Shown here: positions 32,891-33,731 of the stretch, piece by piece
How the letters are laid out: the number at the start of each line of letters is the position of its first letter
How positions within the stretch are numbered: the first letter of the stretch is position 1
From: Macrostomum lignano
Taxonomy: Eukaryota
Assembly: GCA_002269645.1 (NCBI GenBank)
Contig: NIVC01002238.1
Coordinates: 93,597 to 157,596 of the forward strand
Direction: 5' to 3'
Length of the DNA: 64,000 nucleotides
The notes under the pieces: generated by a model
The model's database searches: none
What the model was told of the DNA's origin: nothing
What the model saw: only the letters and a program-made list of their open reading frames with translations
Position numbers and translations under genes: made by a program

Positions 32891-33369
32891 TTAACTTTAC
32901 GTTACTTTTCAGTGGATAACCTTCAAGATGATGAAAAATAGTAGATTTTCTGCGGAGCTTTCCTTTCGGATACAACAACAGCAAAATCTCCCTTTCATGG
33001 TACACACATACCAATTTCGCCGATAATACACGATACATTACTACTCGTAAGTAGTAAGAAGGAGATACATGTACAGTAGTATTAAAATTTTTATATTGTG
33101 CGGTGCGTGCATCTGAAGGTCATGCAACTACGGCCCTTAACAAAAAAGCAAAAATGTTACGCATACTACTTCTACGCAACTGTAAGTAGCATAACGAAGA
33201 CCGATCGATTATTGGATAAATTTTTCATTTTAATTAGTGGCTCAGTTTTATTTAGCACATTTTTATACAAACTCTTTGAGAATTGCGCACATGCAACTCA
33301 GCAGGAGCAGCTGGATACTGGTGTGCTATAGATAGATGATCTCAAAATTCCATTATTGTCAGAATTCAA

Positions 33370-33606
33370 TCAGGTCAGCAGACCGCGACACTTGTCCGGG
33401 ATGCTGTCGTGAGCGTTCAGAGTGCTGGCTAGGAAGGGCAGGCAATCTTCCAGGATGTCTTTCCGTTTCAACTCGGCCAGCTCGTCGGCGTCATCGGCGG
33501 CGTCGAACGGACCGTCGTCAGCATCAGCTGGCTGAGACACCGGCTTGGCAGTCAGTGCCGTCGTCAGCAGCAGCAGCAGCAGCGACAACAGCAAAACGCA
33601 GCGCAT
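33370..33606 (-). CDS. Small secreted prepropeptide, 78 aa (signal peptide, acidic pro-region, KR site, 30-aa mature peptide with 2 Cys)
   Basis: MRCVLLLSLLLLLLTTALTA / KPVSQPADADDGPFDAADDADELAELKR / KDILEDCLPFLASTLNAHDSIPDKCRGLLT*. GC-rich codons; TATAAATA on the minus strand at 33724-33731; AATAAA on the minus strand at 33247-33252. Confidence 0.75.
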   Translation of the reverse strand: MRCVLLLSLLLLLLTTALTAKPVSQPADADDGPFDAADDADELAELKRKDILEDCLPFLASTLNAHDSIPDKCRGLLT

Positions 33607-33723
33607 TTGGCAGCAAGAGATCTCCGGCTCACGAATCAGCACCGCTGCACGAATTCCTGACGAATCGATGCGCCTGGGGAGTCTATAAGAATTGGCTTAC
33701 GGCTTCGCTCCACAGGGGCCGTT

Positions 33724-33731
33724 TATTTATA
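33724..33731 (-). promoter_or_regulatory. Candidate TATA box (TATAAATA) for the prepropeptide gene
   Basis: Consensus match ~120 nt upstream of the ATG at 33606, on the correct strand. Confidence 0.5.

Follow-up and report, generated by a model that had tools for sequence, protein, structure and literature searches.

A probable gene for the precursor of a small, lineage-restricted secreted peptide or mini-protein in the flatworm Macrostomum lignano

Introduction

Somatostatin, MCH, urotensin II and ANP/CNP are single-disulfide peptides located at the C-terminus of their precursors, behind a dibasic site, and their rings comprise 6-17 residues. The Drosophila sex peptide and DUP99B, small peptides that are secreted and act in reproduction, have about 30-36 residues, a single disulfide loop at the C-terminus and a restricted taxonomic range; to our knowledge, they have neither an acidic pro-region nor a dibasic processing step. 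Orphan 'secreted peptide prohormones' are described for planarians (PMC2953531), and Mlig-pro1-76 are prostate-limited seminal-fluid candidates of the free-living flatworm Macrostomum lignano (PMC5977470). Here we describe a short gene on contig NIVC01002238.1 of M. lignano (assembly GCA_002269645.1; NIVC00000000, the Mlig_3_7 genome; PMC5730564). All coordinates refer to the stretch of 64,000 nt of this contig that was analysed (the window). With considerable confidence, we take the locus for a real single-exon gene, annotated but uncharacterised, that encodes a 78-residue secreted acidic mini-protein; most likely, the product is the precursor of a small peptide or mini-protein that is secreted and restricted to this lineage.

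Regeneration, bioadhesion and sexual selection can be studied in M. lignano, a transgenic model species that is amenable to RNA interference (RNAi), but whose repertoire of signalling peptides has been charted poorly. The gene is at present one among thousands of 'hypothetical proteins' in the genome and is not set apart functionally. If it truly encodes a single-disulfide secreted peptide, it would be a cheap target (an mRNA of about 470 nt, a synthesisable 29-mer, and RNAi by soaking), with possible uses in the study of lineage-specific hormones, seminal-fluid manipulation and adhesive release.

Gene structure

The gene occupies positions 33247-33731 of the window on the minus strand (-), and comprises the following elements in the direction of reading:

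33723..33731 (-): TATA box, TATAAATAA, 125 nt 5' of the ATG; the same in all three genomic copies
33607..33700 (-): predicted 5' untranslated region (UTR) of ~95 nt, with the start near 33700 inferred from the TATA spacing
33370..33606 (-): single-exon coding sequence (CDS) of 78 codons plus TGA (33372-33370), as annotated in GenBank on NIVC01002238.1
33547..33606 (-): signal-peptide-like residues 1-20, MRCVLLLSLLLLLLTTALTA, according to a crude test for hydrophobicity and a (-3,-1) site
33565..33583 (-): (CTG)6 microsatellite, from which the poly-Leu core of the signal peptide is translated; seven units in one genomic copy (L003, see below)
33469..33546 (-): acidic spacer, residues 21-46, KPVSQPADADDGPFDAADDADELAEL, net charge -8
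33482-33504 (-): 12-nt repeat in 1.9 units, inside the acidic spacer
33460..33468 (-): K47-R48-K49, candidate dibasic cleavage site of the PC2/PC1 type
33373..33459 (-): C-terminal unit, residues 50-78, DILEDCLPFLASTLNAHDSIPDKCRGLLT, with C-x17-C, net charge -3, 3171.6 Da reduced
33442-33444 and 33388-33390 (-): codons of Cys55 and Cys73, respectively
33247..33369 (-): 3' UTR, with an AATAAA poly(A) signal (33247-33252) ~118 nt past the stop codon; the signal is intact in all three copies

No ATG is found in the 125 nt read between the TATA box and the start codon (33606-33604). The open reading frame (ORF) of 78 codons is translated as MRCVLLLSLLLLLLTTALTAKPVSQPADADDGPFDAADDADELAELKRKDILEDCLPFLASTLNAHDSIPDKCRGLLT. 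It contains cysteines at residues 3, 55 and 73, the first of which is located within the leader, and 17 residues separate the other two. An initial annotation, made from the nucleotide sequence alone, had described a complete compact gene (TATA box, ATG at 33606, stop codon, AATAAA) for a precursor with signal peptide, acidic spacer, KR(K) site and a two-cysteine C-x17-C tail. All gene elements were recovered on the minus strand at the coordinates it had given, and each part of the precursor layout was found in the translation.

Coding potential and transcription

The identical protein is already annotated in GenBank as the product of a single-exon CDS (GCA_002269645.1, contig NIVC01002238.1; hypothetical protein). 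The GenBank annotation of this assembly was built solely from genome-guided RNA-seq transcripts (StringTie/TACO), with ORFs predicted by TransDecoder and with transcript ends trimmed by use of trans-splicing and poly(A) data (PMC5730564). Because these gene calls derive purely from RNA-seq, an assembled transcript, and hence transcription of the peptide gene, is implied, if indirectly. The gene is missing from the older UniProt/WormBase gene set (cluster of one member). The neighbouring hexosaminidase and homeobox genes likewise are represented only by NCBI-derived entries, with no Logan or transcript-derived copies; since they show the same pattern, missing copies of this kind are not evidence against expression of the peptide gene.

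With a codon table built from the real coding sequence of the window, the annotated frame obtained a codon log-likelihood of 42.9 bits, and the other five frames 28.9 bits or less; by this measure, the peptide ORF ranks first among the 53 ATG-ORFs of 60-100 amino acids (aa) in the window. The N-terminal repeat-rich half (codons 1-41) and the non-repetitive C-terminal half (codons 42-78) are both coding-like when tested separately (reference set of 1330 codons; background, the base composition of the ORF itself). A signal-peptide-like start is predicted for three of the 111 ATG-ORFs of at least 50 aa in the window (crude test: uncharged hydrophobic core and -3/-1 site), and one of these three belongs to a genuine gene, being the first exon of the hexosaminidase next to the peptide gene.

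The region has 61% GC, and an antisense ORF of 158 aa (33336-33812, plus strand) overlies the whole peptide gene including its promoter; ORF length is therefore uninformative by itself as evidence for a gene, and it is the combination of features that exceeds chance. The antisense ORF has a lower codon-usage score and resembles an incidental product of GC-rich coding sequence.

Genomic copies

The block of hexosaminidase, peptide and homeobox genes is present three times in Mlig_3_7 (NIVC01000980.1, NIVC01001265.1 and NIVC01002238.1), with 98-99.9% identity, and in all three contigs an intact peptide ORF is located ~3 kb upstream of the copy of the homeobox gene. The three ORF copies are:

7124-7360: copy L002
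7151-7390: copy L003
6782-7018: copy L004, which corresponds to 33370-33606 of the window

The protein encoded by copy L002 is identical to that of the window copy, at 99.93% DNA identity over 1.5 kb. Copy L003 (98.0% identity) encodes one additional Leu, due to an added CTG unit, and carries one synonymous C>A exchange at codon 37, as well as one substitution and a 4-nt deletion immediately downstream of AATAAA. The cysteines and KRK are identical in all copies. The copies are recent duplicates, such as are to be expected of the DV1 line of M. lignano, which is partly polyploid (PMC5730564).

In the flanks (-800..-1 and +238..+800), 14 substitutions were counted in 1363 nt (~1% divergence); DNA beyond +800, where tandem repeats misalign, was excluded from this rate. 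From it, ~1.8 nonsynonymous changes would be expected among the copies and none was seen (P ~0.17), a test that has no power, as copies of 98-99.9% identity cannot test selection. The complete lack of nonsynonymous changes appears consistent with constraint, and is no proof of it.

Search for relatives

No relative was detected in any of the following searches, apart from the gene itself and its copies. The best match in a Pfam scan was DUF4576 (E 0.18, below the cut-off), over the region of signal peptide and spacer, and membership in this family was rejected. A word-indexed search of 5.8 billion proteins returned the query itself only, and an exhaustive HMMER search of 1.84 billion representatives returned the query and one 861-aa bacterial repeat protein; the latter match is spurious, for its score is made up of seven weak matches between its repeats and the D/A/T-rich part of the query. 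Among PDB sequences, chlorophyll a/b-binding proteins show a resemblance (GPFD..ADD..LAELK.K.I) that was dismissed as chance (best E 0.23). Furthermore, no relative was found in a scan of Joint Genome Institute (JGI) metagenomes, no paralogue inside the 64-kb window (tblastn and blastn of the gene), no Rfam match in the 31-36 kb region, and no match of peptide substrings in the searchable full-text literature. The initial annotation's view that the mature sequence belongs to no recognised family held in the Pfam, word-indexed, HMMER and PDB sequence searches alike. Of the paralogues and orthologues with conserved cysteines that it had suggested looking for, two intact copies, which also retain KRK, were found in the same assembly, beside the other copies of the homeobox gene, and none in the databases searched.

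The reach of these databases can be calibrated with the neighbouring hexosaminidase, for which M. lignano itself matches at 99% and the next match has less than 60% identity; this drop shows that the databases contain no close congeners from the genus Macrostomum. 'Orphan' is hence a weak statement, namely that no homologue is detectable in distant taxa, an outcome to be expected of any secreted protein that is short and evolves fast. As a long shot, the gene might be the first known member of a family of bioactive cyclic peptides specific to Macrostomum.

Predicted products and processing

The leader consists of a charged n-region (MR), a Leu-rich core of 12 residues and the c-region TTALTA. 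The poly-Leu core is encoded by a perfect (CTG)6 whose length varies among the copies, and part of the spacer is the 12-nt repeat, which hints that the secretory leader and the pro-region may have arisen from simple-sequence DNA. The locus neatly illustrates how microsatellite-like DNA may have supplied both a secretory signal and a pro-region, and so bears on the origin of new secreted genes. Cleavage of the leader is likely at A20|K21, with A17|L18 as the predicted alternative; the former site has a small residue (A20) at -1 and Leu at -3, six residues beyond the hydrophobic core. The predicted products comprise the 58-mer left after cleavage at Ala20 (isoelectric point (pI) 4.16, net charge -8) and, after cleavage at KR(K), a 26-mer spacer (net -8) and a 29/30-mer tail. 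The 29-mer has 3171.6 Da in reduced form, net charge -3 and pI 4.35, and the 30-mer 3299.8 Da, net charge -2 and pI 4.75; the helical hydrophobic moment of the tail is at most 0.5 and mostly below 0.35, i.e. weakly amphipathic. No N-glycosylation sequon is found in the product.

The reading that we favour, tentatively and at somewhat less than even chances for the mechanism as a whole, is a convertase-processed secreted pre-pro-peptide, for which no homologue was found outside M. lignano. The Leu-rich N-terminus would direct the precursor to the endoplasmic reticulum, where the leader would be removed, most likely after Ala20, leaving a strongly acidic pro-form of 58 residues (pI about 4.2, net -8). 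Cys55 and Cys73, then the sole cysteines left, would pair as one disulfide and close a 19-residue ring. A convertase of the PC2 type would then cut at K47-R48(-K49) in a gland or neurosecretory cell with regulated secretion. Once trimmed by carboxypeptidase, the products would be a 26-mer spacer peptide, which is anionic, and a cyclic 29/30-mer, and the secreted effector would be either of these or both. Whether a convertase processes the precursor is, taken by itself, evenly balanced in our judgement.

We favour this reading because no element of the gene's anatomy is missing and its ORF begins with the first ATG past the TATA box; because the exact protein is annotated from transcripts, in the best of six codon frames and first in rank among 53 ORFs; because the ORF is intact in three of three copies and KRK is located exactly at the junction of spacer and Cys-bearing unit; and because the signal-like start is rare (3 of 111), a pc2 homologue exists in M. 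lignano and orphan gland proteins are common in this species. The homologue of Smed-pc2 in M. lignano (RNA815_2403.2) gives severe RNAi phenotypes (PMC4490696). Among the prostate-limited transcripts of M. lignano, 31 of 76 are without a BLAST hit and a signal peptide is present in 38 of 65 (PMC5977470), and genes of the tail region are enriched for signal peptides and are fast-evolving (PMC7336406); these base rates favour a gland product.

Several observations weigh against processing as a prohormone. The precursor contains no amidation signal and no repeated peptide copies. In shuffles of residues 21-78, KR or RR occurs in 17% (P ~0.17), a dibasic pair of any kind in 43%, and a dibasic site followed by both cysteines in 15%, so the site is compatible with chance; its sole uncommon feature is the tribasic run (3.5% of shuffles). 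A helix predicted by AlphaFold 2 (AF2) for residues 36-65 passes through KRK (single sequence, pLDDT 60, pTM 0.29, unreliable). Simple-repeat-like DNA, namely (CTG)6 and a repeat of the GAC/GCC type, makes up about half of the ORF, as would fit a young gene of uncertain function. No homologue was found in any database searched, the sole relatives being the two near-identical copies in the same genome, of which neither carries a gene call (the window copy is the only one of the three that does), and the comparison of copies has no power to show selection (P ~0.17).

Alternative interpretations

The product may instead be an unprocessed secreted acidic mini-protein, of which the 58-residue form (net -8, one disulfide) is itself functional; we consider this possible, if unlikely. 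Such a protein would be released constitutively from a gland (prostate/seminal fluid, cement, rhammite or mucus, or the releasing gland of the adhesive organ) and would act as a polyanion or, being small and helical, as a ligand, with KRK merely part of the helix. This interpretation accommodates a dibasic site that is compatible with chance (17% of shuffles), the single helix that AF2 places, at low confidence, over residues 36-65, and the anionic character of the entire product and not of the spacer alone. It also agrees with the gland transcriptomes of M. lignano, which are rich in orphan signal-peptide proteins (PMC5977470; PMC7336406), and with the small negatively charged releasing factor that is postulated for adhesive organs (PMC6410801; PMC9229212). 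However, charge and complexity split sharply on either side of KRK, as at a spacer/peptide junction, KRK standing exactly where the acidic, low-complexity spacer gives way to the Cys-bearing unit, and a tribasic run would be expected in just 3.5% of shuffles.

Improbable, in our estimate, is a young or non-functional ORF, i.e. low-level transcription of a sequence of recent origin from GC-rich repeats, with no selected function and with a coincidental likeness to prohormones, in which the (CTG)n tract yields poly-Leu and the GAC/GCC repeat yields the D/A-rich stretch. Consistent with it are the lack of homologues in the searches, the repeat-derived N-terminal half with a microsatellite that differs in length among the copies, the position of the gene in a unique island between large tandem-repeat arrays, and the fact that long ORFs are cheap at 61% GC, as illustrated by the antisense ORF of 158 aa; further, one of three copies is annotated, the gene is missing from the older UniProt/WormBase set, and there is no significant evidence of purifying selection among the copies. 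It would, however, require that the TATA box, the start at the first ATG, the poly(A) signal, the signal-like start and the best codon frame all coincide; moreover, the C-terminal half, which is not repetitive, looks no less coding-like than the repeat half, and three of three copies are intact with zero nonsynonymous changes.

That the product (58-mer or 26-mer, net -8) might be the releasing-gland molecule of the duo-gland adhesive organs is a long shot, suggested by analogy of charge, size and secretion: in the duo-gland adhesion model, a small negatively charged molecule discharged by the releasing glands is postulated to mask the Lys/Arg repeats of Mlig-ap1, which leads to detachment (PMC6410801), and the identity of this molecule was still unknown in 2022 (PMC9229212).

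A precursor of an antimicrobial peptide or toxin of the frog-skin type, whose acidic propiece neutralises a membrane-active mature peptide until cleavage, has formally the same layout but is very improbable here, as a net charge of -2 or -3 (pI 4.4-4.8) makes the putative mature peptide anionic and leaves the propiece no cationic peptide to neutralise, the helical hydrophobic moment is low along most of the tail, and no similarity to toxin or antimicrobial-peptide families was found (Pfam, HMMER, PDB sequences). Of the proposal in the initial annotation, an orphan peptide precursor, the compact gene, the prohormone-like layout and the lack of a known family stand, whereas its toxin and antimicrobial options are disfavoured by the anionic and weakly amphipathic tail.

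Genomic context

The peptide gene is located between genes for a beta-hexosaminidase (about 39.4-45.2 kb) and a paired-like homeobox protein (27.4-30.4 kb), all three on the minus strand, and sits in a unique island between large tandem-repeat arrays (32060-32838 and 34681-35656). The other features predicted in the window are:

2739-4136 (-): single ORF for a Galactosyl_T (beta-1,3-galactosyltransferase) protein of 465 aa, E 2.6e-34
27404-30387 (-): paired-like (Rx/Arx-type) homeobox gene BOX15_Mlig028926g3, 3 kb downstream of the peptide gene
30698-31181, 32060-32838, 34681-35656 and 36308-39303: tandem-repeat arrays around the peptide gene
39423-45211 (-): beta-hexosaminidase (GH20) gene, with introns full of stop-free tandem repeats
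47563-47760 and 46755-46976 (-): two exons of a pterin-4a-carbinolamine dehydratase gene (PCBD/DCoH; Pfam Pterin_4a, E 6e-30)
48822-52076 (-): remnant of a long terminal repeat (LTR) retrotransposon, with gag-aspartyl protease, RT-RNaseH and integrase domains
54280-55377 (+): single ORF for a rhodopsin-family G protein-coupled receptor (GPCR; 7tm_1, E 4e-14)

The homeobox protein, which is encoded on three contigs of the assembly, has an octapeptide-like N-terminus (FTIEGIL) and a Gln/His/Ala-rich tail. The arrays comprise 46/150/196-nt CT-rich units, (CTCTC)~200, a 27-mer in 18 copies at 95% identity, and several tetranucleotide arrays; those that flank the peptide gene yield long fake ORFs, e.g. 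31876-32919 (plus strand). Similarly, the intron repeats of the hexosaminidase gene produce spurious long ORFs at 43125-43808 (plus strand), matching Pfam GLTT, and at 40400-41410 (minus strand).

An orphan GPCR had been noted at a distance of 21 kb in the initial annotation, unlinked to the peptide save by proximity, and the receptor gene was indeed located 20.7 kb away. Its nearest solved relatives are the LPA1 lipid (lysophosphatidic-acid) receptors (E 6.5e-8), and it is no obvious peptide receptor. The GPCR was rejected as a candidate receptor for the peptide: it is encoded 20.7 kb off on the opposite strand, beyond the LTR retroelement, and is nearest to lipid receptors.

Comparison with known systems

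The predicted precursor shares with those of somatostatin, MCH, urotensin II and ANP/CNP the succession of signal peptide, spacer, basic site and short C-terminal one-disulfide peptide, present in one copy and without need of amidation. Unlike these prohormones, it has a ring of 19 residues (C-x17-C), an anionic peptide and a much shorter precursor (78 aa), whose processing is a prediction; it shows no similarity to them by exhaustive HMMER search and contains none of their motifs.

Precursors of the preprodermaseptin type from frog skin similarly combine a signal peptide, a strongly acidic propiece ending in KR, and one C-terminal mature peptide; in contrast, the tail in M. lignano is anionic and weakly amphipathic, and there is no homology to these proteins of an unrelated taxon. 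The likeness to the sex peptide and DUP99B is a functional analogy only, for the ring size differs and there is no homology. With Mlig-pro1-76 of the same organism and the orphan prohormones of planarians in the same phylum, the predicted protein has in common that it is short, bears a signal peptide, has no BLAST hits and presumably evolves fast.
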